Source of the DNA: Paraphysomonas bandaiensis
Taxonomy: Eukaryota; Protista; Chrysophyceae
Direction of reading: 5' to 3'
DNA length: 64,000 nt
NCBI GenBank assembly: GCA_965644295.1
Contig: CBFFRP010000369.1
Span: 35,221-99,220 of the forward strand
Positions 15,839-64,000 of this stretch are shown one piece after another (the stretch's first letter is position 1; each line of letters begins with the position of its first letter). A program made the translations under genes and the position numbers. The notes under the pieces were generated by a model. It was not told where the DNA came from. It saw nothing but the letters and a program-made list of their open reading frames with translations, and did no database searches.

Positions 15839-17968
15839 TCACTGATCCAATCCCTTTCGTAAGTATGCAAAAGCTCCAAAACCTAAAACATTGTACATGA
15901 AATAAACTTTAAATATAAACGGAAGCCACGATGCCACAGCATTATCTACCTCATGTTGATTCGGGTGACTATCGTCATCTGCGATAGCCTGTGCAGTAGC
16001 CATCATGCGCCTCAGATCAATTTTTTTCTGTCTCTGTACACTTGTTGGCTCGCTACTATTTGTGTCCGGCGTACGTTTCAATCCGCCAAACGAAAAAAAC
16101 TTGCTAAATATTGACCGCCGAGAGGACCCAGCATTGGCGGATTGATCATATGAAGTGTCGGAGGCTACACTGTGGGAGCTGTCTCCCACCAACCGTATCT
16201 ATGGATAAATTTGTAAGACATTATGAATTATTGTATGAATACACATCTGTACCGGAGCCTTATCATTCTTGGCCCACTCCATGATGCTGTGGAAAGACAC
16301 TGGCTGGATCCAGTCTGGTACAAACGATGTACTGTTGCTGTTATCATGAGAGGCACTCAAAGACATAGCACTCAAGGGTTCCTTATCGAGTACAGGGCCT
16401 TCTTTTCTCTTCAAGTACACGACATACGCACTATATATTACAAGTGGGACGCACAACAACACAAGCCAGGCATATTTTGCATGGTTAGGTTCACTATGAG
16501 CATCATGCTTCCCCTGTAGGGAAATATCATTGCCAGTCCATATATATGCGCATCCAGTCCGACGCTCCCCGGAGTTGATTCCATTCGTATCACCTACCAC
16601 GAAATGACCCGCTCTTATTGCCACGGAGACACCAACTCGACTGTATTTATTATCTGCTGAGGATGATGTCCCCGGATCAAGAAATTGATTACTCCAATGC
16701 CCACTATGGGTCCATCCATCACCACTTGAAGAAAACAAATATACCGAAGCGTTTACCCCTAACACTCCGTCACCCGGTGCACCCACCACTATGTTGCCGT
16801 GGTTTATTCGTACACTATACCCGAACATACCGAACTGCTCCACCTCCGCCAAGGTGCCGAGCTCAACTACCCGTCCCCACCACTCTGCATAATTCCCACC
16901 ACCCTCTATTGGTGCATACCCCAAACGATAAACATGCGCCCCGCCAGATTGCACCTCTACGACATTTCCTTCTCCCTCTTGCTCGATATATCTGGTCATC
17001 AGATATTGGCCGACAACTACTTCACTCCCCCACACCGCCACACTGTGACCGAAGTACGTCGTAGTTTGCATATCTGGCGGTTCAAGCCGACTCACGAGCT
17101 CATACATTGTACCTGCTTCTAGGCCGTAGTATACATCGTCATAGAAACCTTGCTCAGTTACATTGCGGGCATAAATATAGACTACCCCAGTTCTACTATT
17201 CGCCCAAGGTGCTCCGACAACCAGTCGAGACATGTGAATGTCAATACTCCAACCGAAATTCAAGTACGGTAAAGGATCCTCTGGAAATAAAACAGAATCT
17301 AACACCCAACCATCCGGTACAGGGGGGGTGTAGTCATCATCCCCAGCTGCACTGATGCCAAGGGATCGGGAGGCCGCTCCTTCATCGACGCGATAGGTGT
17401 ACACTACTCCACACTGTGTATAGAGGTCACTATTGCCAACTGCACCCACAGCAAGAAGTTGGTCTTTCAACACCACGCTCCATCCGAAATGTTCGTTCTT
17501 GCTCGGCCCGTCGGAATAAAATATCCCATATTCGTCCCAGACACCATCTGTTTTGGAATACATGTACACTGCACCCGAGTTCGTGTATTGAGCATCATCA
17601 CCATACGCACCAACTACAGCTGTGTCGTCATTACATGACACACTCCACCCAAAATAATCGGAATCCCCGCCTAGACTCGGTCTTAGTTTCGCTTGTATAT
17701 CCCACCCCCCTGATGATGAGAGGCCATACACATAAGCCGTACCCGACTCCACTGATCGAGATGTGTCCTCATAAGAGCCCACTATCAGTGACTCTCCACA
17801 TAATGCCACACTACTACCATAACTATCCCCCTCCTCTCCGTCCTTAGAGTACAGTTTATAAGCATCAGATTCGCTGAATCCCCACTTGGAATATCCTTCT
17901 ATACACACACACAGATACAGACACAGACAGACAGAGAGAGAGGAAAACAACTGCATGAGTAGATGCAT
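15839..17968 (-). CDS. FG-GAP repeat (integrin-alpha-like beta-propeller) membrane protein, paralog 1; last exon 15839-16197
   Basis: Repeated 'FGWSV...VVGAY...GAVY'; N-terminal hydrophobic segment; TM 'YAWLVLLCVPLVIYSAYVVYL'; intron ~16251-16198. Confidence 0.88.
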
Positions 17969-18632
17969 GCTGCGCTATATTATGATATGCGATTACACTC
18001 ACGGCATCATGAGTATATATATGTATGTATGTGTATATTATTCCCCATCACATGACATCACCTCATGCTCATATCATACTATAGAACACACACGCTGCTG
18101 TACATACCACACTACCACACTACTCATATGTGCAGAATAGGCACTTGTACCTCAAAATACAGCACTGTACTCCATACTGCTGTATGTCATACGTATAATA
18201 TTCGGATATCTACTGTGGAAAATTGGCTAAAAATTTAGATTATTATGTACAATGAGAATACCAGGTATACAGACACAATACAGTACAACCATTGGTACAT
18301 ATGTACGGATAATATATGTACCAATGAGATCTCGACATAAAGCGATGAGGTTCATCGATTGGTTTATAATCCTTCTATTAACCATCCATCTCTCTTTGCG
18401 GGAGTCTTATTGTGTGAATAGGAATACATGTATACGGTATACGGTATACTACATACATACGGTGCTGTTAATGGAGTGTTGAGCAGTGCGGTCATTCAGC
18501 ACACACTCATATATATATACATGTACATGTACTCACCATGACACATGCCCTCGTTCATATCCTTCACTAGTACAGTAATCTAATGTGTCTCATCTCTCTC
18601 CTATCTCTCTCTGTATTGGTGTGACTCTAGTT

Positions 18633-20720
18633 ATGGTTCGAGACAGAGGCGTATACGCATATGCGTGCATGTGTGTGTGCATGTGTATCACTCTGACAGC
18701 CGTCAGCTGCTCATCATCTGCCGCCCATGATAACACACAGCATATGGAGTTTCACGATACACTGTCTGGATCGGGATCAAGGGGATCCATGCAGAGCAAG
18801 TGGGTCCAGTACATAGCCGCAGATGACTCAAGTGTGGTTAAAGTTGAGTGGATATTCAGATCTGTACGCGGATTAACTCAACGATTGAAAACGGAACATT
18901 GTGAGCCTGTGACATGGGTTGTGTCTCTTAATAACTCGTCCATTGGACAGTCCACCTGTATGTGGTCAATGAGAAGAGGCCTCTGCTCGTCTGGCTGTGT
19001 ATTACCTCGTCCTAATATACGGAACACCTACTTTTATATTGATCCATTAGATCTCCTTTTCAATATATCCTCTTTCAGCCATAACACCGAAGCATATAAT
19101 CTTTGGGATCACACTCTATCGACAAAGGAATATACTGTTGTAGACACTGAGATATCAATGACCGAAACTAAATACTTGAGGTCTTTAAGTAGCGGATATT
19201 CGGAAGATTGGAAGAGTGCCAAGCCCCTCCGACTCTTTTCTTCTGACGGGTATTCCTATGATAACTTTGGCACTAGTTTGAGCATGCACAGTGATGTCAC
19301 GGCTGTGGGAGCAGTAACGAGAGACCGTGGTGGTCTTGTGTTCGTCTTCTATCGACAAGGGAAGGACTTCTTTCAAGACCCTTACCCTCTGGCAGGGTAC
19401 CAAGAATATTCCAATGACTTTTTCGGTTGGAGTTTGGATGTTTACGATCGCTCAATCGCCGTTGGAGCTTACCAGACTGTTGTTCAAGGCGAAGATGCCA
19501 CCTCAGTCGGTGCGGTGTATGTATTCCTGCACATGTCATCTGGGTGGACGGTAGAATCATTTATACGAATTGCTCGAGAGCGTGACGGTAAGGACAAAGA
19601 AGATGATAACGCGCCACGTTACGATAATTTTGGTTGGTCTCTGAGTCTCTATGACAACACTCTAGTCGTTGGAGCTTATGGGGATGATAGTATGGGGACC
19701 TCAGCAGGAGCTGTCTATGTGTACGATCGGTTGGAAGGGCGTGCCTTCTCCTGGTCTCTGACCCAAAAACTTGTCGCAGATGATGGGATGGCATATGCAT
19801 CATTTGGATGGAGTGTGAGCCTCTACGAGAATGTGACAGCAGTGGGTGCGTATGGCGACAGTAGCGTGGACTCGTATATGGGGGCAGTATACGTGTTCCA
19901 CCGTACGGATAATATGTTCTGGACGCTTGCTTCTAAGCTGGTTCCTGCAGATGGAGGAGTAAATGATTTCTTTGGGTGGGATGTAGAGGTATGGGGAGAT
20001 GTGCTTGTGTCAGGGTCCCACAGCTGGGCGTATACAGGCTCTATGGATGAGGTCCCAGTTGGTGCCGTCTACACGTATACCCGTGATATCACGTCATCGA
20101 TATCAGAGAATGGAGTATGGGGAGCAGAGTACAAGTTGAAACCAATCGATGCGGCCACGAGATACTTTGGTAATTCTGTCTCTCTGGCAGACAATACAAT
20201 GGTAGTGGGTGCATTCGGGGATGCTAGCAATATGGAAGAATCTGGAAGTGCCTTTGTATACACTGCGACGTCGCACTCATCCACCCATGAAAATGGTGAC
20301 CCTATTACATCAGTCCATTGGTCAAAGCGTATTAAGTTATCAACAAATAGCACAGAGGGGTATATGGACTTTGGGTACAGTGTTGCGGTTTACGATGGTG
20401 TTGCACTGGTTGGTGCTGTGCGAGCTGATGGAGCTGTTGCGGACTCGGGGGCGGTGTTTGCATTCGTAAGATCTGTGGATAAATCATCCCTAGGAAACCC
20501 AGTGAGCGAAACCACCTACATAGCCCTAGTATCTTTTCTTCCTGTGCTTTTTGCTATTGTATGTGCAGTTATTGGTATAGCAATGATTTTCTTGAAACCT
20601 GACAAGTCGTCCCAAATAACTGTGGTTGATGAAAGTGTCTATGGAAAAGATGACCATAGCGGCCACGATATATCTGCTCATTCTGTCACAAGTCTTATTC
20701 CCCACCATTCCGGGAGTTAG
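18633..20720 (+). CDS. FG-GAP repeat beta-propeller type I membrane protein, paralog 2
   Basis: About seven 'FG(W/T/N/Y)S(L/V)...VGA...GAVYVF' repeats; signal-like N-terminus; TM 'IALVSFLPVLFAIVCAVIGIAMIFL'. An intron within 18800-19080 is possible. Confidence 0.9.
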   Translation: MVRDRGVYAYACMCVCMCITLTAVSCSSSAAHDNTQHMEFHDTLSGSGSRGSMQSKWVQYIAADDSSVVKVEWIFRSVRGLTQRLKTEHCEPVTWVVSLNNSSIGQSTCMWSMRRGLCSSGCVLPRPNIRNTYFYIDPLDLLFNISSFSHNTEAYNLWDHTLSTKEYTVVDTEISMTETKYLRSLSSGYSEDWKSAKPLRLFSSDGYSYDNFGTSLSMHSDVTAVGAVTRDRGGLVFVFYRQGKDFFQDPYPLAGYQEYSNDFFGWSLDVYDRSIAVGAYQTVVQGEDATSVGAVYVFLHMSSGWTVESFIRIARERDGKDKEDDNAPRYDNFGWSLSLYDNTLVVGAYGDDSMGTSAGAVYVYDRLEGRAFSWSLTQKLVADDGMAYASFGWSVSLYENVTAVGAYGDSSVDSYMGAVYVFHRTDNMFWTLASKLVPADGGVNDFFGWDVEVWGDVLVSGSHSWAYTGSMDEVPVGAVYTYTRDITSSISENGVWGAEYKLKPIDAATRYFGNSVSLADNTMVVGAFGDASNMEESGSAFVYTATSHSSTHENGDPITSVHWSKRIKLSTNSTEGYMDFGYSVAVYDGVALVGAVRADGAVADSGAVFAFVRSVDKSSLGNPVSETTYIALVSFLPVLFAIVCAVIGIAMIFLKPDKSSQITVVDESVYGKDDHSGHDISAHSVTSLIPHHSGS

Positions 20721-22564: not shown

Positions 22565-23677
22565 TCATCGTCCTGCCGACTGCGCTCTGTTCGATCCTGG
22601 GAGTTTATTAGCCCCAGAATCCGAGAGGGTCATTCGTATTCTAAGTACTGCGTTTCCTGACGGAGGCCGCTCCCTCGGCTTCTTTTTCAAGGGAGGCATT
22701 GACTTGGCACGTGACATAGATGGGAACTCACGTTCAGGGAGGTCAGTGACGAGATGTGACAAGGGTGTAGAAATTTGCATCGCTGTTTGTATCGAGGCAT
22801 GTACCTGCCGCCCTACCTCCGAGGCTCGGGCCAGCACATCTGCATCCGGAGGGGAACTGAGAACACTCATAATATGATTGTTCTCTATATATAACTCATT
22901 GCTAGTTCGTTCTGCATAGTCATATATGCAACTGTCAGTATCAGCAAAGCTTGGGCGATGTGAATCTTCTATGGAGTCAAGACTGCCCCACTTAGAATCA
23001 GCGTAGGCAAGATACCGCTCTCGTATGACCCCCCTAAGTAATGCTGTGTCAGCAGCGTCCATAGTGCTAGAATTAGTCTCCAAAAGGTCAACATTGCTCG
23101 AGCTTGCCGAAGAGTTTCTTGCTCGGCGAAGGTCCGAAATAGAATGAGCAGAATGGGCTTTCTTCTTCTTGTGCTTCCAGGACTGCCGTATGTACCGCTT
23201 ACGACTGGATATTATATCCCCGCAGTTGGACAAACGCCACTGCACGTTTAGATTAATAAAATTATTTACTGCACGGTTAAATATGGCCGTGATTCGGTCG
23301 ATATATTTCACATGTTTCGTAGGAGAGGGTGCTCGCATTGAAGCTGTCAGTAAGTTTAAGTCCACCTCGAGAAACTCCCTCAACAAACAGTTATCTGACG
23401 GAACTAACGATAAGACAGAAAGCAAATACAAATCCAGTTCTTTCATTCGGGTCAGTATAACATCATCGTAATACTTTCCCAAAATAACCTTAGGTGGCAG
23501 GCGCCTCGGTATATTATACCCCGCTTTCCGTATCTTCCTGTCGAAACGATCAAACTCACTGTATCTCTTCCTCGTCGCCCACTCCTGTCCATGAAAAACA
23601 ACCTTGATTACATACTCCACATGACCGGCTAACCCATAGCCTACAGTGTAACGCTGAATAGTTGCAGTGACAGCCAT
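22565..23677 (-). CDS. PX (phox homology) domain protein, sorting-nexin-like
   Basis: 'HVEYVIKV...WATRKRYSEFDRF...RLPPKVILG...RMKELDLYL...LREFL'. Confidence 0.9.
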   Translation of the reverse strand: MAVTATIQRYTVGYGLAGHVEYVIKVVFHGQEWATRKRYSEFDRFDRKIRKAGYNIPRRLPPKVILGKYYDDVILTRMKELDLYLLSVLSLVPSDNCLLREFLEVDLNLLTASMRAPSPTKHVKYIDRITAIFNRAVNNFINLNVQWRLSNCGDIISSRKRYIRQSWKHKKKKAHSAHSISDLRRARNSSASSSNVDLLETNSSTMDAADTALLRGVIRERYLAYADSKWGSLDSIEDSHRPSFADTDSCIYDYAERTSNELYIENNHIMSVLSSPPDADVLARASEVGRQVHASIQTAMQISTPLSHLVTDLPEREFPSMSRAKSMPPLKKKPRERPPSGNAVLRIRMTLSDSGANKLPGSNRAQSAGR

Positions 23678-36397: not shown

Positions 36398-38327
36398 ATG
36401 TGGAGATTTTTGCTTGTAGGATTGGCTGCGAGTGTTTATGGGTCATCGCTTCGAGATGGGCGTGTTCTCTACACTGATGCTACGCGTACGTTTAATAACA
36501 GTTATGCGGTGCGGAAAGCTGATCCCAATGGAGCAAGATTAGATAACTTCGGGAGATCAGTTGCGATAGTGAAGGGATTAGCGATTGTTGGATCACCTGA
36601 AGATGATGACAATGTACTCGCAAAGGACGCTGGTGCTGTGTTTGTGTATATTGAAGATGATGCTAACAGTGACTGGCGTCTCATTCGTCAGATAGAGGAC
36701 GGAGAGCCTGGAGACTATTTCGGATGGTCTGTTGCGCTGACCACTGACAACTTTGCGGTAGTCGGAGCCTGTAGAGGAAGCCTGTATGGAAAATTTTCTG
36801 GTGCAGCCTACAGTATGTTCATTGAGAGGGATCCATATGGCGAACAACAGACCCCTACCCATATCGTTCCAACCGAAAGGCATGGTTCCGCATTCTTTGG
36901 ATTCAGTGTTGCAGTAGATGAATATAATGGCAAGGTAAAGGTAATTGTGGGAGCTTATGCGCACAGAGGCAAAGGTGCCGCTTTTATTTATACACGCAAT
37001 AAAGATGGCTCCCTACAACAAAACCAGATTCTATACGGGTCAGATTCTGTGTACGGTGACAAATTTGGGTGGAGTGTTTCGATATTCAATGGTGTTGTGG
37101 CTGTTGGTGCACCCCTGGATAACAAACAGGGTTCTGCATACGTATTTACCGAGCAGTCAGGTGTGTATGCACAGACCGACAAGATCGCTCAGACATTTGT
37201 AGATGACGATGAAAACAACCCCCTGTATGGTGACTCCTTTGGTATGTGTGTTGCGGTGGGACGCGGCATTATTGCTGTGTCCTCACCACATAATGATGTA
37301 CGCGCGACTGATGCTGGGGCTGTCTACATTTACAAGGGCGAATCAGATTACACGTTTTCACAGACACTCTTTCCTCCCAAGTCGCAGCAGTACAACAGGT
37401 TTGGCTGGAGTCTTGCATATGATAAAGCTAATGATCGATTGGCGGTCGGATCTGATTTTTCGAAGCGCTCTACAGCAGGCCAAGTGTATCTGTACGCTAT
37501 GTCATCGTCCGTCTTTTATACCTTGTCTGATGTCATCTACCCTGCCGACGATGGTAGTTTTGTTGAGTCCTCGGACGCGAATTTTGGATACGCGGTTTCC
37601 ATATACGGTGATTACTTAGCCGTTGGGGCAGAGATGGGTACTGGAGAGACTAGTTTATCTGGCGACGTGTACTTCTACAAGGCACAGACGTAAGTGGACG
37701 GAATTTTATTGCACAATATAAGTATTATGCTTTGTTTTCAACCTTTACAATTTAGTATTTCTGCATCGTAACCTCATATTTCTATAGTGAAAAGGAGGCT
37801 TCCACTCGTAAGAGCGGCAAACTATCCTCCTCGGGTAGCACTTCTACTACTGAGACTTCTACGTTTAGTATGGTCGGAGTGACGCTGTTGATTATCGTCC
37901 CTCTTTGTGCCGTGGTTATACTCTACATGTGGTACCGGTAAGGGTTGTGGGAATGAAGTTTTGAAGGTCATTTATTTTTTCTAGGTACAAGTCTGAAGGT
38001 GACAATGAAGGATTCGGTACATTTGTGTGGGATGAAATTGGCGACGTCTGGGACCGCGTAACTGGTAAGGGCGAAGCAGAGACGACTTTAAATTTCATGG
38101 AAGAAGATGATAGCCAACACAGTTCTCACCCCATGATGGAATCACGGGGATCTGGATCAGATGGGTCAGGCAGCCGTGAGCCAAAGAAGTCCCGTAGCAA
38201 GTTGTCGGGTTTGACGTCAGGGTCATCTCGTAGTCCATATTCGAGTAAATCGTCTAGAACTGGCCGCTCTAGTAACAGCGCCAAAAGGGCTGCAGGATAT
38301 ACCTCTGCTAATATGGAAGAGTTATGA
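36398..38327 (+). CDS. FG-GAP repeat beta-propeller type I membrane protein, paralog 3 (3 exons)
   Basis: Signal peptide MWRFLLVGLAASVYG; seven FG-GAP repeats; exon ~37788-37937 gives TM 'MVGVTLLIIVPLCAVVILYMWY'; Ser-rich tail in ORF 38025-38327. Confidence 0.92.
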
Positions 38328-42147: not shown

Positions 42148-42273
42148 CTCAAATAGGTCCGCTATGAAGATGCGAACAACTAATACTGTGATGTGGTACA
42201 GAGAGTTTAAAACAATGCACGCATATCACACTACACCACACATACATAGATACACATGTAACCATGACATCCA

Positions 42274-43083
42274 ACATACATACATACATACATACATACA
42301 TACATACATACATACATACATACATACATACATACATACATACATACATACATACATACATACATACATACATACATACATACATACATACATACATACA
42401 TACATACATACATACATACATACATACATACATACATACATACATACATACATACATACATACATACATACATACATACATACATACATACATACATACA
42501 TACATACATACATACATACATACATACATACATACATACATACATACATACATACATACATACATACATACATACATACATACATACATACATACATACA
42601 TACATACATACATACATACATACATACATACATACATACATACATACATACATACATACATACATACATACATACATACATACATACATACATACATACA
42701 TACATACATACATACATACATACATACATACATACATACATACATACATACATACACATACATACATACATACATACATACATACATACATACATACATA
42801 CATACATACATACATACATACATACATACATACATACATACATACATACATACATACATACATACATACATACATACATACATACATACATACATACATA
42901 CATACATACATACATACATACATACATACATACATACATACATACATACATACATACATACATACATACATACATACATACATACATACATACATACATA
43001 CATACATACATACATACATACATACATACATACATACATACATACATACATACATACATACATACATACATACATACATACAT
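42274..43083. repeat. (ACAT)n microsatellite, ~810 bp
   Basis: Direct observation; one interruption near 42756. Confidence 0.99.
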
Positions 43084-43119
43084 GGTGGTGTAGCTGTCTG
43101 TAGTAGTGTATAATCCTTC

Positions 43120-44204
43120 ATGTCACACCTAGATAAAAGCACTTGTTTACTCGGCGATGGTAAGGAGATCCCGTGGGTGGGGTTTGGCACGTATCTCTCC
43201 TCCAGTGATGACGTCAGGAGCAGCTGTGCGTATGCTCTTGAGTGTGGGTACATGCATATAGATACAGCTGAGGTCAGTGATAGGGGCCGATGACATGGAT
43301 CGGATAGTTGTATATGTGTTATCGTATATGTATTCTGTGTATATATGACTGTAGTATGTCGCCTGTATGTATGTATGTATATATATATGTGTGTCTTATT
43401 GTTAGTGTGTTATGCTGTACGGCTATAGTGTATAACATGCAGATATGGTGTATCGATTAGGGATATAAATCTGAAGAGGATGTCGGTTACGTGTTAGCGA
43501 ATACACAAGCCTCGAAGCCCTTTATAACTACCAAACTCTGGCCAGGAATGGAAGGTAATGTAAAGACCTACGAAGAGACAATAGAATCTTGTCAAGCTAG
43601 CATTGCAAAGCTCGGAATAGAATATGTGGACTTGTATCTAATACATGCCCCGTTCGGAGGCCCTATTGGTCGAATTGAACAGTGGCGTGCTCTAGTTGAG
43701 CTGCAAAGGCGTGGTTTATGCAAATCCATTGGTGTGTCGAATTTTTCTGTAAAGCATTTGGAGGAGTTGAAATCTGCGGGGTTACCACTACCAGCAGCTA
43801 ATCAGCTAGAGTTACATCCTTTGTGTCAGCATCGTGATATTGTAGAATATTGTAAGTTGAACAATATATTACCCATTGCGTACTCCAGTTTAGCACCGCT
43901 CTCCTCATGGAGGCCGGGACAACGGTCTGCGAAATTGGATATGAATGACCCCTCAAGCACCCATTGCGAATTGTACAACACTCTGTCAGAGAAATATTCT
44001 ATTTCACCGGCACAATTGTTATTACGGTGGGCATTGCAGCACGGATGGCCTGTGTTACCGAAATCCATCAATTCGTCCCGAATTGAGAGCAATTTTCAGC
44101 TTTTTCATTTTAACATTAGTGATGATGATATGTGTGCTCTTGATGGACTTGACGAGAATCTAACGTTCGCTTGGCCTAATGGCGATCCATGCCTGTCTCC
44201 GTAG
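43120..44204 (+). CDS. Aldo-keto reductase; intron ~43273-43460
   Basis: 'IPWVGFGTY', 'HIDTAE/GY', 'FITTKLW', 'YVDLYLIHAP', 'SIGVSNF', 'NQLELHP', 'AQLLLRWALQ', 'LPKS'. Confidence 0.95.
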
Positions 44205-45419: not shown

Positions 45420-46270
45420 ACACTGGAACGCTTAAGACTAAGCATACATTGTGTGCAATTTGCATCGGGGACTGCCTTATGTGCCTCACGGCAACCAGGG
45501 GAAGCAGTAATATACCCTTCTGAAATTGGCGATCTGGTGGCCTTCCTTTAGGCATTGTGTCAAGTGGCTCGGAGGTATGCGGATGAAGGTCTTGCAGAAG
45601 GTTATGGCCTACTGTGAAGAAGCGTCGAAAGCGACTCTTTTGCTGTCTTAGCCAGCGGCAGAAAGCACATGCAAGAGAGTGTATAGCTGGACAGGAGTGG
45701 GATATGAGTGTTATCCGGTGTGTCCAGCAACAGGGAGTCGAGAGGGAGTGTGATGATCCAGAAGAGGCACACTATCTGATTGAGGAGTGTGAGACTGTGT
45801 AATAGAACTAGGTCTGCCAAGGTCGAGTACTCTGATAGACCTATGCACGAGATGATCATGATGATGGTCTGGAGGAGAGACTCTAATGTCCTCAGCTTCC
45901 CTTGTTAGTGTGTACGTTAGTGCAGGGGGGTACAGGCTGAGGCATAGAGTGTGTGTGGAGGAGAGATGACGGCAAAGTATAAGAGACGAAGGGAGGGGAG
46001 ATAGTTTGTCTGGAGGTTTTCGAGGAGGAGGTAGAGTGTAAGGTGCGTGTGTATGACAGTGCAGTGGTGTTATGAGTGTGTTGGATAGAGAGAGCTGGTG
46101 ATGTGTCCAGTTAGGCAAGACGGGAAATTGCAAGGCCAAGCAATGGGGCTTGGAACGTGTACAACATGTTTGGACAAGAGTTTTGTCGGTAAGGTGGTGT
46201 GATACAAAATGCAGCAGTGCGTGCAGCAGTACTGGGCCTGGGCCAGCCAATGTAACACATCCACGGTCTA
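45420..46270 (-). mobile_element. Highly degenerate retroelement-like fragment (possible Copia gag-pre-integrase remnant)
   Basis: Minus strand 'LSTLLHSR' followed by a CxxC ('CTQC'); lies between the two halves of a hAT element. Weak. Confidence 0.3.
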
Positions 46271-46501
46271 AACTGAGACATAGATCGTGGTGTGAGATAA
46301 AAAGATGTAACTTTTTGTTGGGCTATATTTTCAACCAGATCAAGGTAAGTTCATATTTTCAAAGACACACAACCATGAGCAATATTATTCAATATATTGC
46401 GAAGCCATATTGGCAAAAATAATAATAAATATATTTGTAGCAAGCAAAAATACATTTTTACCTGGCCATATGCCTCTTAGTTTTTTACTTATTATTAGAA
46501 T

Positions 46502-49500
46502 CTCAGAAGATCGCCTTCAGAGTCGTCAAGAACTTGATAATTTGGTTCGGATTCTTGAACGCCTCTTGCTAAATAAAAGGCATTTACAACTTAGAACTTC
46601 AGAGTAATGTTCACGTCCGCCAAACGATATGTACAAAGCGATAATCTTGCAATTTTAACATGCCATGACTGAACGAGCTCAACAGAAGGAAAATACTATT
46701 CATATCTATTACGGGGTGCCCTCATTCTCATAAACACCACATACATGTACACGAGGATTGCAAAAAAGTATACATAAAATACATTTAAAACACACTAAAA
46801 TGCTATAACGGGACAAAAAAGTACTGCATCCGATCATACGCATCTGACTCACGAAAACTAAATCGAAACCCTTCAGCAGAAGGATATGTTATCGGAAAAC
46901 GAAAACACTTTTATATACTTCCCGACAGGAGAAGGAGAGTGCATCACCAGACGCATACATGCAATTATAATTCCCCAGAAATGCCGGATTTAAGATCTAC
47001 TTGCTCTACAACTGATTTGGATCGGCATTCGGGCAAGAGCGCGGGACTGTTTCAAACCCAAGAGGTGAGCGCAGTCGCTTACGACTATGTCTTCCAGAAG
47101 TACTATCAGCGTCTTCTGTAGTAAGATCAATAACAGCAGGAAAGCTGTCGATTCGAAACACTTGCTTCGACCCACTACAACTATTAGATGGACTCAGTGC
47201 ATCACTCTCAGTCCGACTAAATTCTACAGGAGACTGAACTACAACTTGGTCAGAAACACCTTCGGAAACAGCAGTAATATCATTCTGCAGTGAGCAAGAT
47301 GGCACCAACTGCTGCCCACAATTTCTTTGACGAGAAACACAACCATCACACGCACCAGTATCCAGGCTGCAAAGTCGACACTTATCTTCTCCAGTACACA
47401 GGGTCTGCCCAGGACAACAAGGCGATATTCCGCGACTACCCACACTAGTTACTGCATTATTCGTATCTACACTCGCAATCGTAGCCAAATCCAGGTTTTC
47501 CGCCGATGTCGGTAGAGTGTATCCCCTGGCGGTATCGGAAGATGATGCTGATTTTTCCAGTCTATGATGTTCACCTGGTGAACCAGTTGATATACCTATG
47601 CCCCTTCGGCTGTCTTGAAATCGAAAAGTCACGTCTCCAAAACGCCTATTACTTACGCCTCGGCAGCAATCCGAAATACTTTGTGAAGTTAAACCCGTGG
47701 CCATTGCAGCTTCCTTTCCTGAGCAGAACACGTTTAGCACTTCGCCAGTCGCAATGTCCACCATTTCCACTGCCTTGGCGCCTGGACCACTGCTCTTTTG
47801 ACCAACTGTGGCTTTAGGTTTCTTCTTGACTTGAGTACAAACGGATTCTTGATCTACATTGGCCGCACCAACCAGCTGGTGATGACACGAGACAACTTTA
47901 GTTTGGGGCACTGAATTATTGGCAACAGTAACATCATTCTGTGGAGCATATCTGTCGCAATAAAAATATTGACGTAAGTTGGCGTAGTTATATATAGCAT
48001 CTTCATCGCACATTCGTGTATAAGAAATCAAACATAGTTTTAGCTATCAGTTTCGCGTATTTCATAGAATTATACATGATTGTACCTCCACATGAATCCA
48101 CCCGCAGAATGAGATATTCCTTTGCAGCACTTAGTTATCGAGGATGCTCTAGCCCCAGTGGCCTTCGAAGCCACAACGTTCGATGGATACGTGGTGATTA
48201 CTTTTCCTGTGTAGAAATCAAGCCGTTGTACGGCTTTCCCCTTTACTTCAGCGGAGCCCACTTGACTATCAGCCGTTTCCATTTCATGTACAAAACTTTC
48301 TTCTACACCCCTGTGGTAGTAATCTTGATCAATGGCCAGGAGAGGGGCTATATTATCTCCAGTCTTCATATCCAGGTTTTCCGCCGATGTCGGTAGGGTG
48401 TATTCCCTGGCGGTATCGGAAGATGATGCTGATTTTTCCAGTCTATGATGTTCACCTGGTGAACCAGTTGATATACCTATGCCCCTTTGACTGTCTTGAA
48501 ATCGAAAAGTCACGTCTCCAAAACGCCTATTACTTACGCCTCGGCAGCAATCCGAAATACTTTGTGAAGTTAAACCCGTGGCCATTGCAGCTTCCTTTCC
48601 TGAGCAGAACACGTTTAGCACTTCGCCAGTCGCAATGTCCACCATTTCCACTGCCTTGGCGCCTGGACCACTGCTCTTTTGACCAACTGTGGCTTTAGGT
48701 TTCTTCTTGACTTGAGTACAAACGGATTCTTGATCTACATTGGCCGCACCAACCAGCTGGTGATGACACGAGACAACTTTAGTTTGGGGCACTGAATTAT
48801 TGGCAACAGTAACATCATTCTGCGGAGCATATCTGTCGCAATAAAAATATTGACGTAAGTTGGCGTAGTTATATATAGCATCTTCATCGCACATTCGTGT
48901 ATACGAAATCAAACATAGTTTTAGCTATCAGTTTCGCGTATTTCATAGAATTATACATGATTGTACCTCCACATGAATCCACCCGCAGAATGAGATATTC
49001 CTTTGCAGCACTTAGTTATCGAGGATGCTCTAGCTCCAGTGGCCTTCGAAGCCACAACGTTCGATGGATACGTGGTGATTACTTTTCCTGTGGAGAAATC
49101 AAGCCGTTGTACGGCTTTCCCCTTCACTTCAGCGGAGCCCACTTGACTATCAGCCGTTTCCATTTCATGTACAAAACTTTCTTCTACACCCCAGTAGTAG
49201 TAATCTTGATCACTGACCGGGAGAGGGGCTATATTATCTCCAGTCTTTATATCCAGGTTTTCCGCCGATGTCGGTAGAGTGTATCCCCTGGCGGTATCGG
49301 AAGATGATGCTGATTTTTCCAGTCTATGATGTTCACCTGGTGAACCAGTTGATATACCTATGCCCCTTTGACTGTCTTGAAATCGAAAAGTCACGTCTCC
49401 AAAACGCCTATTACTTACGCCTCGGCAGCAATCCGAAATACTTTGTGAAGTTAAACCCGTGGCCATTGCAGCTTCCTTTCCTGAGCAGAACACGTTTAGC

Positions 49501-51585
49501 ACTTCGCCAGTCGCAATGTCCACCATTTCCACTGCCTTGGCGCCTGGACCACTGCTCTTTTGACCAACTGTGGCTTTAGGTTTCTTCTTGACTTGAGTAC
49601 AAACGGATTCTTGATCTACATTGGCCGCACCAACCAGCTGGTGATGACACGAGACAACTTTAGTTTGGGGCACTGAATTATTGGCAACAGTAACATCATT
49701 CTGTGGAGCATATCTGTCGCAGTAAAAATATTGACGTAAGTTGGCGTAGTTATATATAGCATCTTCATCGCACATTCGTGTATAAGAAATCAAACATAGT
49801 TTTAGCTATCAGTTTCGCGTATTTCATAGAATTATACATGATTGTACCTCCACATGAATCCACCCGCAGAATGAGATATTCCTTTGCAGCACTTAGTTAT
49901 CGAGGATGCTCTAGCTCCAGTGGCCTTCGAAGCCACAACGTTCGATGGATACGTGGTGATTACTTTTCCTGTGGAGAAATCAAGCCGTTGTACGGCTTTC
50001 CCCTTCACTTCAGCGGAGCCCACTTGACTATCAGCCGTTTCCATTTCATGTACAAAAGGTTCTTCCACATCAAAATCCCTGTAGTAGTAACTCGGATCTG
50101 CCTGATCGCTTATATCATCAGTTGATGCGTTTTTAAACTTCCACTTGAATCCACCACATGCTTTGTTTGGATTATAACAGCAGGCAGAAATGCTCTTCCG
50201 GTCTTTGCATATTGCAGTAGCTGCTGCTGTCAACGAGGAATAGACCGCAACTACTTCACCCGTATTCATGTCGAGTTGCTCCACAGGTTTAGAGCACACT
50301 GCACCTACTACTGACTGACTTAGCTCACAAAAAATCATCCATTCTTGAACCTACCTGCAAAGCAATGACTGTTGTGATCACTGTTTCCCCTTTTCAGTTC
50401 ATCAGTGGTATGCTATATATACTGCATCAGGTAGACACGCAACCAAAGGCGCAGCTATACCTTCAACACGAAAAAACTCGATACTAGATTTCGTCCAAGT
50501 AGCATATCGGCAGTAAAGTACACGGAATGTATTCGGCGAGCGTTTTTGCCTTCTCTGTCTCCACATAGCATTGGCTGCAACAGAAAATACATACTGACCA
50601 TACGGCGAAAGGATATGTCTTCAACATTCTCTTCCGTAAGCGCAATGCGGGCAAGTTTTGATTTACATTCACCCCATATCAACAACAAATTGCTGCCGTA
50701 TTTGTGTTGAACCTGCAAAAATTGAGTAACCTCTCTTGATGTATACTGACTATCCAGTGAGTTTGCACAATGCTGCATAATTTTTTCCTTCCACTGAATA
50801 TACGTGGTACAGCTATGCCATATACGAAGTAAAAAGTCTTCATGAAGAATGAGTATTCTGCTCATGGGCATGCGACGGTGAGAATTTCCGTCATACAATA
50901 CCACTTGTTCTGAATTTAAAACTGCGATCACACACATGATCACCACCGAGCGTTTGCCAGTTTCGTTGTCACCTACTAGGACCACTCGTCCCGGTTTAAG
51001 GTATGTAAACGCATATAGATCCACTATTTCTCTCCATGAGTCAGAATCATCTAATTGCGGATGCATGCAGCCATCGTCATTGTCGTAATTCGCATTATCG
51101 TGGAGACGATTACTTTCAATCTCAGGAATGTGACTGACTTGATACGATTCACCAACTCTAACACCACGACTACACACTTTCCACGATAAAAACACATCCA
51201 CATCACTACAATCAGACGTAATCAGATCATCAGTACAAATATCTTCGTTGCTATAATTTTCCAACTCGTCTGTCCTTTCTGGCTTCCTGCAACTGGCACG
51301 GCGGTCCGAACTGGACTGCACTGAGTACTGCCTATAGCAGTCCATAAAATAATCAATCTCATTTTCATCCATATCTTCCGAATCGCCATCGTCGTGAACC
51401 ACATGCCACAGGGCATATCCATCATTCACACTCGCAGGCAAATAGGCAACTACAGTCCCGTTTACCTCCCCATGTCCACTGAATCGCTTTCTCACATGGC
51501 TACCAATACGCGACTCGTGATTAGCCGAGAATACCCAACCCTGTGATTTCATATCATCGTTAATGGCTTGTCGACTGGCAGACAT
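46502..51585 (-). CDS. Tudor-like/ELM2/SANT-like chromatin protein with a tandem array of NUMOD1 HTH modules; multi-exon; extreme 3' end frameshifted
   Basis: Tudor-like 'IGSHVRKRFSGHGEVNGTVVAY...WHVVHDDGDSEDM'; ELM2-like 'VRVGESYQVSHIP'; SANT-like 'YTSREVTQFLQVQHKYGSNL...MVSMYF'; seven NUMOD1-like units. Introns 50460-50413, 50354-50305 and three 134-nt introns keep the frame open to a stop at 47006. Confidence 0.72.
47489..50057. repeat. 881-bp tandem repeat, ~2.9 near-identical copies, inside a coding gene
   Basis: Identical anchors at 47489/48370/49251 and ORF stops at 48070/48951/49832; the copies differ by scattered SNPs. Confidence 0.97.
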
Positions 51586-52504
51586 ATCGATCTATAGATG
51601 TCTGTATATTATAAGTGATTTAATAATAAAATAGCCGCATCCCACTCATACTCTTACAGTTACCATACATAGTGTATCATACAGATCTGATAGCCAATTG
51701 TCTGACTCGTCAATACATGTGTGGGTTGCAATGCCTCTGCTATGACTCCACTATGAGGTTAGTATACAGTATACGTCATCGTTCCTAGTCATCGACTTCA
51801 TCCATCATCTATTGAAGCACCCACAATTCTCGTATCGAGCAACACTTCGTACCACTACTAACCATATATCGTACTCATATAAACTGTACTGCTGTATGTC
51901 TAGATGTACGTATAGCAGTACAGGTAGAGACAGTGTGCATAGGTATTGTACAGGAATCTATTGATACGCACGTGCGGTGGCTAAAAGATCAGAAGCAGTT
52001 AAAGAATCCTACTCATTGTCGAACCCAATACCACTGTTATGTGTAGTCGACCTACACCATCCAATGACAGGTATTAGGGTGTAGTGCTTATCACAATAGA
52101 TGGTCGGTCTATAATGTACTCTTCGCCTTTATAAATTATCCAACTCAGTTGCACGTCTTTGCAATACAGAGCAACCACGTTGCAGAAATGCAAGAACCAA
52201 CTGTGTGTGAAACCATGTGCAATCCAATCAAGCATCACTTCTATTCGAATGCCTATCATGTCAGGATTCTACTTGCAAAGACGGCTGCTTCGGTTCTTAT
52301 CTCCACCCTTTGTGGTGTTCTCTAACTGTATTGAAATCAACTTCTGTGTAATGAATTGTCTTAAAGTGTCTCCTGCTGCTGCTGTTTTTACTGTCCCTCT
52401 CTATCTCTCAATGATAGTGTGATGTAGTAATAAGAGACTAAGGGATTGAGAATAGTGACTTATATTACTAGCTACGAAATTTATATGAGATGTGCCCTAT
52501 ACAT

Positions 52505-61303: not shown

Positions 61304-64000
61304 TTGGTGGCCTTGTAAAGTAGAGTGGGTATGATTTGGGTCTCTATAACCATGACTTTGCAACCCGCTGAGGCGTGCCTGATCCCAAGGTGTGTGCCCG
61401 CTGCCTTTAGGTAGTTTGTACACCAATTGTATGAGTCCGTGTCTGTAGGTGTTAGTGGTAGGTCAGCCCCCAAATAGTGTATCGATTCATGAGTCGTTTG
61501 TATTGGTACAGGTTGGGGTCTCCAATACCAGTCATATAAGGTAATGTGTCCGGTTTGTTTGACCTGGGCTAGATTTTCCCGTAGGTGAGGGAAAAAAGTG
61601 CAGATAACCTTAGGTACCGAGAGTTCCATTCCCGAGAAGCTGCAGAACGCCGACATTCGTATCGCCGTTTCCTGGGCTTGAGTGATAGACACATCTATGG
61701 TGGTGATGTCATCCGCGAAGGAGACTTTTTTCTTTGAGTTCGGGGTCAGTAGGAGTGGTGATGGTGTAAGACAGATTGCTCTAAGATCTAGGTCTAACCA
61801 TGTAAGAAGGATATCGTGTAGCGCCACCCAGGCACAAGTGGATTCGGTTCCCCCCTGAGTGATTCCTCTCACGGCCTCAAATCCGAGTACGAACTGTGCA
61901 AGGAAGTGTCCGTCGGTAGCTAGAAGTTCTGCCAACGAGCGTGGCTCCATGTTGTTCGCCATGAACGGCGTCCATGGGAATGTGAGACCCCCAGCGTCTA
62001 ATTCTCCAAACCATTCAACCACAGCATCGGGGACACCTAGCCGAGCCCATGCTAGTTTCATTTTAGATTAGGTGTTATGGAGTCGAATGCTTTTTTGAAG
62101 TCCCAGAGCGTGCAGATGTGTTGGGCATTGTGACGTCTGGCTGCCTCTGAGGCCGCTAGGACCCTTAAAATGGCCGTGTCTGTGCCATTTCTCCAGCGAT
62201 ATCCATGTTGGGACGGGTATAGGATCTGCTGTTCCTCCCAGACTGTGAGTATCCTGTGGGAGATTATTCTTGTCAGAATTTTCCGTGATATTTCGAGCAG
62301 ACCGATCGGTCGAAGGTTGGAAAAAGAGGGTTCTCCTGGTTTCTTGAGTATGGGGGTCATTACTCTGTCTCTCCACAAAGTAGGCACGTGTTTGTGCTTC
62401 CAGAGCGACTTGATAAGGGTGAATGCTTCCTGTTGTATGGCTGGAGGCCAGGATTTGACCATGTTGGATGAGACCATGGAGGGTCCGGGAGCCCGGTTGA
62501 AGGATATGGAATGTAGGGTGGAGTAGAATTCTTCGTGCGTGATGTCCTTCTCTAAAGCCTTTCCGAGTAGGTCCGCCATTTCTGGTTTAACTTTAGTGCA
62601 TAGTGCACGTCGTAGTCCGTGTTGTAGGGTAAGGGGTATGTTCGAGCACGGATGGAGGGGCTCCTGGGAAGTCACCGATTGAGGGTCAAGGAGGGTTTTC
62701 CACCAGTTGGGGTCGTCCTGTAGTCTTTGTGCGACTGGGTCCAGTCCTGCAGGTTCCGCGTGGTGGTCTCGAAAGTGTTTGTTGATTCCTTCGTGGATGT
62801 CTTGCGGGGTAGTGAGAAGTGTCCCGTCAGTAGTTCTCACTGTCGTTAGTCGAAGTGGCGTTTTGATTTTAAGTCCTATCTTCTGCAGTACTGCTTGTAG
62901 TCTTCTCTGTTCTAGTAGTGCTTCCATTTGGTTTGTACGGTCTGTGAGCCTCTTGCGCATCTCCGTCCTGTCTCGTCCGTGCAAGAGTCCTCGCATTCGA
63001 ATCACAATGTGTAGAAGGTTCTTCTTGGTGACTTGTTTGGCAGTCCAGCTCAGAATGGCTCTGGGGTCTGCTGATCGGTAATCATTCCTGAAGTTGATGT
63101 CGGCTATTCCTTTCGCAGGTCCCGTGGAGTTTTGGAGGTACGAGTTCCCGCGCTCCTGCCAGGCGGTGATGAGCGTGTGGATCGGATTGCGTAATGGGGA
63201 TCCACGCCATCCGTGTCTTTTATATCCAGCTGAGTTAAACATTTTCTGAACTATCTTTATTACCATAACCATCCCTTCTTGAATTACCCTCATTTCCGGG
63301 GAGAAACCATCTTTAAAATGTGAACGAATTCGCTGACACCGGTCATGGAGCCTCGTGCGACGGCTGTAGCGGGGACCCTTTGCTGTAAGCGTTGCCTGCA
63401 AGGTGATGTGATGTATCGCCGCTAGTCGGGTGGCTGCAGTCTCTGGGTCTAGTGTTGGGCTGAGGTTCGTGTCTATAGGGGGCAGTTGGGCGTGTAGCAT
63501 GAGAAGTTTGGCAGCGTACGCTTTTACCTCCTCAGGATCCCTTGGGTTGATGTTTAGGCGAGGAGGTATTTTTAAGTGTGACTCTGGGGAAGAGATATCT
63601 TGTGTTACAGTAATATTGAATCCAACCCAAACCGGCCTATGGTCAAACGCTGCTGCAATTAAGGTGGGGGAATTGAGGCATCCGGTGTCAGTGATTCGCA
63701 TATGCTGTGGAAGTGGCGTATGTAGTATGTGATCGATACGCGAGATTCCCTTGTCCAATCTGTGGAATGTGTGAAAAGCTTGCCGTTGGAGTAATTGTGT
63801 GATTAGTGGCGCCGACAGCTGGAGTTTACCGGCTAGTGGGCGTATATCTCTATTCGTGGTGTGCGTTTCCATGGATCCGTTAAAGTCGCCTGCAATGATT
63901 ACCGTGTGACCTCTGGCCCGGGCCTTGGTAACCCATTTAGTGATGATGTTGCAGAGGAGATCATATGGGGCAACCGGTTTAGTATTGCGGGTCGCTTTCC
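61304..64000 (-). pseudogene. LINE ORF N-terminal part (APE endonuclease and RT) with a 1-nt frameshift near 62060
   Basis: ORFs 62058-63872 and 61297-62061 overlap in different frames at 'FDSITPNLK / MKLAWARLGVP'. Confidence 0.9.

Follow-up and report, generated by a model that had tools for sequence, protein, structure and literature searches.

Seven NUMOD1 Modules Joined to a Tudor and ELM2-like N-Terminal Half in a Predicted Gene of Paraphysomonas bandaiensis

Gene Model

We analysed a window of 64,000 nucleotides from Paraphysomonas bandaiensis (Chrysophyceae; GenBank assembly GCA_965644295.1, contig CBFFRP010000369.1, positions 35,221 to 99,220 of the forward strand); coordinates are those of the window unless a contig or locus is named. 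On its minus strand, the region 51585-47006 reads as six open exons with GT-AG introns which, with predicted splicing, give 4,077 nt or 1,359 codons. Based on the results described below, this is probably a single, spliced nuclear gene for a DNA-binding chromatin factor of about 1,350 residues, in which a Tudor/ELM2-like/SANT-like N-terminal half is joined to seven NUMOD1 modules. The preliminary description of the locus had proposed the domestication of a homing-endonuclease module on a chromatin scaffold; the fusion of nuclease-free NUMOD1 modules to chromatin-type domains stands, and the ELM2/SANT part of the scaffold turned out to be weakly supported.

We suggest the following mode of action for the protein. 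The N-terminal half would serve as a chromatin-interaction scaffold, and the C-terminal half would carry seven helix-turn-helix (HTH) modules on long flexible linkers. The second helix of each module would lie in the major groove, and the array could in this way tether the chromatin-reading or chromatin-modifying N-terminal half to specific DNA. Two recent duplications of an intron-containing 881-bp unit would have enlarged the array, the frame being kept by splicing.

The elements of the gene, starting with the five long open reading frames (ORFs), are as follows.

51585-50455, 50338-49832, 49793-48951, 48912-48070 and 48031-47006, minus strand: five long ORFs (ORF list)
51585-50461, minus strand: exon 1, 375 codons, ATG at 51585; N-terminal chromatin-type half (ORF and alignments)
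50460-50413, minus strand: predicted intron 1, 48 nt, GT-AG (splice sites and phases)
50412-50355, minus strand: exon 2, 58-nt micro-exon
50354-50305, minus strand: predicted intron 2, 50 nt, GT-AG
50304-49848, minus strand: exon 3, 457 nt; modules A (50135-50290) and B1 (49848-49999)
49847-49714, minus strand: predicted intron 3, 134 nt, GT-AG, GTACAA...GACAG
49713-48967, minus strand: exon 4, 747 nt; modules C1 (49380-49538) and B2 (48967-49118)
48966-48833, minus strand: predicted intron 4, 134 nt, GT-AG
48832-48086, minus strand: exon 5, 747 nt; modules C2 (48499-48657) and B3 (48086-48237)
48085-47952, minus strand: predicted intron 5, 134 nt, GT-AG
47951-47009, minus strand: exon 6, 943 nt; module C3 (47618-47776) and a unique Cys-rich, acidic tail; stop codon 47008-47006
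50305-50460, minus strand: linker zone, with two introns and a 58-nt exon or a single 137-nt intron (50460-50324)

Introns 1 and 2 had been proposed in the preliminary description; both follow the GT-AG rule, and the frame is restored through the 58-nt exon between them. Beyond these, the three 134-nt GT-AG introns connect the remaining ORFs in frame. When in-frame alternatives were enumerated, the donor at 50460 was found to reach the acceptor at 50324 as well, which gives a 137-nt intron with a T-run before the acceptor and a product of ~1,346 codons, with only ~20 linker residues altered. The junction of exon 1 with the NUMOD1 exons can consequently be drawn in two in-frame ways, with or without the micro-exon.

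A retained 134-nt intron (49835-49847, 48954-48966 and 48073-48085, minus strand) would be read as Y-N-H-V followed by a stop. Since this stop lies four codons past the splice point, intron retention would naturally shorten the protein to 2, 4 or 6 modules. The tyrosine closing module B is kept in both cases, as the first codon of the intron and the following exon each supply it. Only one copy of the gene occurs in the genome; exon 1 can be aligned end to end with the related proteins P0003, P0011, P0032 and P0033, no additional long ORF was found in 46000-52500, and Rfam gave no match on the window.

The C-terminal tail showed two further features on the minus strand. At 47297-47425, about 43 residues include 10 cysteines and give a weak match to a PHD-like zf-HC5HC2H profile (E 0.034), and at 47120-47134 the sequence V-I-D-L-T followed by acidic residues looks like a SUMO-interaction motif. 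Neither was found in any of the relatives, and a conserved SUMO-interaction motif was rejected, as V-I-D-L-T occurs only in the window copy.

NUMOD1 Modules of the C-Terminal Half

A regular-expression scan gave exactly seven modules of three types (one A, three B and three C), in agreement with the seven motif copies originally reported. The type B modules end at the donors of exons 3, 4 and 5. All searches were run exon by exon, on single exons. Pfam placed NUMOD1 (PF07453) or I-HmuI_NUMOD-like (PF22083) on all four C-half ORFs, with the best match on the exon-3 ORF (NUMOD1, 40.8 bits vs. a cut-off of 22.8, E 2.4e-10). The exon-4 and exon-5 ORFs scored 23.1 and 23.7 bits for NUMOD1 (cut-off 22.8) and 27.2 and 26.8 bits for PF22083 (cut-off 27), and the exon-6 ORF was sub-threshold (PF22083, 15.1 bits), its module C3 being identical to C1 and C2. 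A tblastn search of phage genomes with the exon-3 ORF returned 79 records (E 1e-5 to 4e-5), annotated as HNH endonucleases, I-TevI-like intron endonucleases and T4-type mobile (Mob-type) endonucleases.

The AlphaFold model of a single module, built from a 12-row alignment, had a mean predicted local distance difference test score (pLDDT) of 94.8 and a beta-beta-alpha-alpha-beta order (E3-6, E13-17, H20-27, H31-39, E48-51). Only two matches in the PDB stand out, namely 8b6e (Paulinella sCTP-23166, template modelling (TM) score 0.73) and 1u3e (I-HmuI, TM 0.77). The earlier assignment to NUMOD1 is borne out by the Pfam score above the cut-off, the similarity to phage endonucleases and the predicted fold. 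The absence of a nuclease domain, also stated at the outset, was confirmed, as a Pfam scan of the exon ORFs at E up to 1 found neither HNH nor GIY-YIG domains.

Based on these data, the modules are nuclease-free derivatives of the domains with which HNH/GIY-YIG homing endonucleases bind DNA. The protein sCTP-23166 binds double-stranded DNA with nanomolar affinity, and its fold, of the same beta-beta-alpha-alpha-beta order, is that of the I-HmuI and I-TevI HTH (PMC10319021). By analogy with I-HmuI, I-TevI and the Paulinella sCTPs, the window modules most likely bind double-stranded DNA via the second helix in the major groove.

Recent Expansion of the Array

A tandem block at 47489-50057 contains 2.92 copies of an 881-bp unit (a 747-nt exon and a 134-nt intron) that are 98.5-100% identical. 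A repeat search likewise gave three copies with a spacing of 881/881 and 98-99% identity; Tandem Repeats Finder, with a longest period of 500, missed the repeat. The two full units differ at 13 positions, of which 12 are exonic and lie mostly in the C-to-B linker, and 8 of the exonic differences are non-synonymous, as read off the two ORF translations. Each partial unit has 2 differences from the reference unit. The expanding array of the preliminary description is accordingly traced to a recent tandem duplication of the 881-bp unit.

It is worth noting that 881 is not a multiple of three, and subtraction of the 134-nt intron leaves 747 = 3 x 249; therefore, splicing of the intron is required for the duplication to leave the frame intact. 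Before the expansion, the array consisted of three modules arranged A, B, intron, C, to which the two new cassettes added C-B-C-B.

A more far-reaching scheme can be built on this cassette, which we regard as speculative and doubtful. In this scheme, array-type DNA readers would have evolved as homing-endonuclease HTH modules on a histone deacetylase (HDAC)-recruiting Tudor/ELM2/SANT scaffold, and duplication of the exon-plus-intron cassette would tune target length and specificity. Retention of the 134-nt introns would produce isoforms with 2, 4, 6 and 7 modules, and the three C-B pairs would read tandem DNA, such as a satellite or an array of transposable elements (TEs).

Related Genes with Variable Arrays

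To find relatives, a hidden Markov model (HMM) of the core (residues 135-375) was run over the retrieved proteins, and the modules were counted with a separate module HMM. The core HMM found 12 clusters (P0003, P0011, P0032, P0033, P0077, P0014, P0040, P0106, P0104, P0029, P0082 and P0089), nearly all of which carry 1-4 NUMOD1 modules C-terminal to the core. The counts by the module HMM were as follows.

1 module: P0032, P0033, P0040, P0077, P0089
2 modules: P0003
3 modules: P0014, P0082, P0104, P0106
4 modules: P0011

In addition, P0016 has 3 modules and the same Tudor type, but the core HMM finds no core in it. The seven modules of the window gene form the largest array among the retrieved proteins. 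The preliminary description had pointed to related genomes as the place to look for the same architecture and for copy-number variation, and both were found, in at least 12 clusters and with module numbers from 1 to 7.

The family occupies at least five loci in the genome. A paralog with four modules lies on contig C380 and is 99.4% identical to P0011 from the MMETSP collection and to P0151, which is one uninterrupted ORF on a 3.3-kb JGI contig. The P0011/P0151 transcript encodes the Tudor domain, the core and four modules together, and comparison of C380 with the transcript proteins requires GT-AG introns of 184, 90 and 55 nt. Since the C380 paralog matches these transcript proteins, the Tudor-core-NUMOD1 arrangement is present on one spliced mRNA in the same species. 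Judged by this comparison, short introns with GTATAT and GTAGGC donors, as proposed for the window gene, are genuine in this genome.

The NUMOD1 module was also seen at three more places in the genome, namely in a bromodomain ORF, in a 175-residue protein and at one further locus. The first of these (L012:584-6214, contig C28 of assembly G000, minus strand) is an ORF of 1,876 residues that combines three bromodomains with FYRN/FYRC, Tudor_5 and a WSD motif; a single NUMOD1-like module, scoring 77 bits with the module profile of the family, closes it. The second (L010:3691-4218, contig C68 of the same assembly) has a basic N-terminus and a single NUMOD1-like module, and its gene is directly downstream of a long ATGTATGT-type microsatellite. 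In other proteins, the Tudor type of the family pairs with WHIM/WSD and Strawberry-notch helicase domains. A search of full-text literature gave no paper on NUMOD1 in relation to diatoms, Tudor or ELM2, and the family is apparently small, lineage-specific and undescribed.

Domains of the N-Terminal Half

According to the models and comparisons, the N-terminal half may consist of a Tudor domain, an ELM2-like region split by a Tudor-like barrel, and a SANT-like bundle, with only the first Tudor domain well supported. These parts are located as follows.

51316-51543, minus strand (about residues 15-90): Tudor domain 1, PTM/DIR17-like (PF21743, library matches, model and Foldseek)
51001-51165, minus strand (residues 141-195): ELM2-like region with the motif R-V-G-x-x-Y-Q-V-x-x-I-P-E at 51121-51159; predicted disordered
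50827-51030, minus strand (residues 186-253): second Tudor/SH3-like beta-barrel (structure superposition)
50557-50763, minus strand (residues 275-343): Myb/SANT-like three-helix bundle (structure superposition)

The Tudor profile PF21743 matched residues 28-78 with 27.0 bits (cut-off 27.2, E 3.8e-6), and no other Pfam family was found on exon 1; the same profile matched four of the five family members scanned. An exhaustive phmmer search with exon 1 gave 405 library proteins, mostly Tudor-only matches. In the AlphaFold model of exon 1, a confident barrel (~15-90) is followed by a disordered stretch (90-194), a small barrel (200-240) and six helices (249-363). The Tudor strands are predicted at 30-73 with pLDDT 72-88 (about 80 for the domain), and the top 30 Foldseek matches of this domain were nearly all Tudor domains, with a probability of 0.9-1.0 but E values of 0.01-0.1. 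The Tudor-like motif noticed initially is thereby upheld by a near-threshold profile score, hundreds of relatives and a predicted barrel.

The ELM2-like region begins with the R-V-G-x-x-Y-Q-V...I-P motif at residues 143-155, in which R143, G145, Y148 and Q149 are invariant across the family. The Pfam profile of ELM2 (PF01448) did not match this protein, and a scan of the same genome with PF01448 gave two other loci, not the window gene. ELM2 is the only Pfam family recurring among the relatives (3 of 5 and 4 of 12 members), always sub-threshold, with a best E value of 0.0012 and a best score of 19.5 bits against a cut-off of 21.7. Of the earlier ELM2-like assignment, the first motif and the sub-threshold matches in relatives remain, and a profile match in this copy does not.

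Inside the ELM2-like region sits a second, predicted Tudor-like barrel, which was absent from the first description. Residues 186-253 superpose on the TDRD3 Tudor domain (VIA-align Z 7.6, root-mean-square deviation (rmsd) 2.0, 57 residues), and the SAWADEE and PHF19/MTF2 Tudor domains also match. Further downstream, residues 275-339 superpose on the SANT domain of MTA1 (4bkx_A 282-333; Z 6.1, rmsd 1.9, 50 residues), and ARR1, PHR2, LUX and R2R3-MYB domains gave Z 5.8-6.2 with the bundle, where the model pLDDT is 58-82. The Z values of both superpositions fall where common arrangements may score. No Myb/SANT Pfam family was found in the 12 family members at E up to 10; the SANT-like motif of the preliminary description keeps a modest structural match to MTA1 and has no sequence profile match.

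A genuine ELM2 protein is encoded in the same genome (L013:1567-3054, contig C143 of assembly G000; PF01448, 24.1 bits vs. 21.7). It aligns with the family over the end of the barrel and the following E-D-x-L...A-L helix (hhalign E 7.9e-4). By eye, the ELM2 N-motif of this protein is separated from the 'EDRALEVLHYCNYD...AL' helix by a long insertion, which opens with 'L-P-x-x-P-G-L-L-V'. From this likeness, a split ELM2 like that of the window family may be a lineage-wide feature.

Other searches with the N-terminal half added little. A profile search of PDB sequences with N-half profiles gave chance-level matches only (MTR3, TTLL6) and no ELM2-SANT chain, and an ESM Atlas feature search with exon 1 was uninformative (best score 0.76). 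Word-index protein searches gave no match with residues 100-375 of exon 1, only Tudor-only proteins in addition with the N-half alignment, and only its own first sequence with the full-length family alignment.

Alternative Interpretations

Several findings weigh against a single expressed gene for a chromatin factor with seven modules. Exact look-up of the exon-1 ORF product gave no transcript of the gene, and neither did scans of JGI contigs with exons 1 and 4, where exon 4 led to a single 37%-identical relative. A library of 1.8 billion proteins contained no protein at least 50% identical to exon 1, though the paralog transcript of the same species was present. The W-x-P and E-F-L / L-x-x-F-L-x-x-A positions of ELM2 are kept in P0003 and P0032 and are degenerate in the window copy. 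The SANT reading rests on a low-confidence model (mean pLDDT 56.8 for exon 1), and a Z of ~6 may reflect a common arrangement. Finally, the count of near-identical units is that of the assembly.

ELM2 alone among Pfam families recurs in the core of the relatives, the putative bundle matches the MTA1 SANT domain from the HDAC1 complex, and the region aligns with the ELM2 protein L013. Together with a module number of 1 to 7 and a recent duplication in the window gene, this would suit a system like that of the KRAB-zinc-finger proteins, in which ELM2-SANT recruits a class I HDAC co-repressor and a fast-evolving NUMOD1 array directs silencing to TEs or tandem repeats; a periodic DNA target may also be suggested by the three identical C-B pairs. 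This explanation is possible but doubtful, as the ELM2 and SANT profiles are below threshold in the window protein and the PDB-sequence search yielded no ELM2-SANT chain. Furthermore, the ELM2-like motif is broken by a barrel of ~60 residues, which animal HDAC-binding ELM2 domains lack, and the analysis gave no link between the protein and TEs.

As for HDAC genes themselves, of the loci found in the genome one is in a single uninterrupted frame, and all others are split across frames by introns. The single-frame locus carries a motif that we take to be of class II type. In addition, an ORF carrying an ELM2 N-motif (C430:170568-170630, L014, 18.2 bits) lies ~5 kb away from a gene with a histone-deacetylase domain (C430:164126-165377 in assembly G000).

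It is unlikely that exon 1 is transcribed separately from the NUMOD1 exons, or that the locus is a duplicate of the expressed C380 paralog that has fallen silent or is decaying. Over 4,077 nt, the frame stays open in all six exons and the phases are compatible across five GT-AG introns, nearly every relative with the core has NUMOD1 modules on the same polypeptide, the donor motifs are like those of the transcript-verified introns of the paralog, and the recent duplicates bear no disabling change. These points stand against the lack of a transcript or predicted protein in the collections searched, where a transcript of the paralog is present, as well as against the stop of exon 1 (50457-50455) right after the proposed donor and the degenerate ELM2 motif.

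An incorrect module count is quite improbable. The assembly is fragmented (669 contigs), and units 98.5-100% identical over 2.6 kb could have been mis-assembled, in which case the true array could have 3, 5 or more than 7 modules. However, every unit has private differences (13 between the full units and 2 per partial unit), which argues against simple over-expansion in assembly.

It is highly improbable that the gene is a homing endonuclease or mobile element, whether still active or active until recently, and this reading was rejected: the modules are closest to phage homing endonucleases and at least 26 NUMOD4-HNH-AP2 ORFs occur in the genome, but no nuclease domain was found in or beside the gene, which is single-copy, has predicted spliceosomal introns and is fused to chromatin domains conserved across species.

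The latter ORFs form a dispersed set of 168-186 residues with NUMOD4, HNH_3 and AP2, a complete homing-endonuclease-type architecture, at 26 or more loci (e.g., L024:1610-2116, that is, C59:142610-143116 in assembly G000). Many copies are found near contig ends and have a very high Asn/Lys content; the set may be part of a repeat, an endogenous viral element or a mobile element. From this set it follows that homing-endonuclease genes reside in the nuclear assembly, with AP2 and not NUMOD1.

Comparison with Known Systems

The HTH domains of I-HmuI (1U3E) and I-TevI (1I3J) belong to the same Pfam families above threshold and have the same predicted fold (TM 0.77 to 1u3e) as the modules of the window protein, and T4-type endonucleases have two modules with similar spacing that align over 89% of the query. 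Unlike I-HmuI and I-TevI, the window protein lacks a catalytic domain, contains seven modules where those have one or two, is encoded by a predicted spliced nuclear gene and joins its modules to chromatin-type domains.

The DB-sCTPs of Paulinella chromatophora (sCTP-23166, 8B6E) are likewise nuclease-free and encoded by a eukaryote, with the same fold (best Foldseek match of the module, TM 0.73, 29% identity), and both groups are lineage-specific expansions. DNA binding was shown experimentally for the Paulinella sCTPs; outside Paulinella the domain is usually combined with other domains, and a Tudor/ELM2-array architecture was not described (PMC10319021). The Paulinella proteins are stand-alone, ~50 residues long and chromatophore-targeted, whereas the window modules are arrayed inside a large chromatin-type protein.

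With the ELM2-SANT scaffolds (MTA1, MIER, RCOR; 4BKX), the window protein has in common the R-V-G-x-x-Y-Q-x-x-I-P start, the E-D-x-L-x-x-I-W...A-L helix and, putatively, a three-helix bundle with a modest structural match to the MTA1 SANT domain; in contrast to them, it is below the Pfam thresholds and contains an inserted Tudor-like barrel. MTA and CoREST are not fused to sequence-specific DNA-binding modules.

In AP2/ERF and ApiAP2 proteins, a DNA-binding module of homing endonucleases was reused in nuclear regulators, sometimes in several copies, and this domain is common to HNH homing endonucleases. The AP2 fold is a beta-sheet, unlike the HTH of the window modules, and these proteins belong to other lineages and have no Tudor/ELM2 scaffold. 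The KRAB zinc-finger proteins resemble the window gene, by analogy only, in combining tandem DNA-binding modules of variable number with a putative repressor-recruiting part. They differ in that the folds are unrelated, the linkers of the window protein are longer (about 40-90 residues), and its family is a handful of genes per genome (at least five loci) rather than hundreds. The nearest precedent for nuclease-free eukaryotic use of the fold is the Paulinella sCTP family, and the nearest conceptual one is AP2.

Other Features of the Window and Genome

The window also contains a BK-channel fragment (901-2100), three large clustered FG-GAP_2 repeat proteins (16199-17968, 18585-20720 and 36398-37693; E 1e-49 to 1e-62), a PX-domain ORF (22565-23677) and a LINE reverse transcriptase (62058-63872). 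At 42149-43253, seven overlapping ORFs of 279-340 residues lie on both strands within 1.1 kb with a guanine-cytosine content of 0.35 and a strong AT skew, and this is probably a low-complexity or repeat region. Silicon-transporter genes were found at no fewer than seven loci in the genome.

Significance

The catalogues of diatom transcription factors are dominated by HSF, Myb and bZIP. If the NUMOD1 modules bind DNA, the family described here would be an overlooked lineage-specific class of chromatin-targeting factors and, if this is true, the second clear case after AP2, alongside the Paulinella sCTPs, in which a homing-endonuclease module was reused by the eukaryotic nucleus. The growth of such an array can be read from the window gene: a cassette of 881 bp, not a multiple of three, duplicates without a break in the frame because it carries its own intron. 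Being small, confidently predicted and naturally arrayed in numbers from 1 to 7, the modules lend themselves to studies of DNA recognition.

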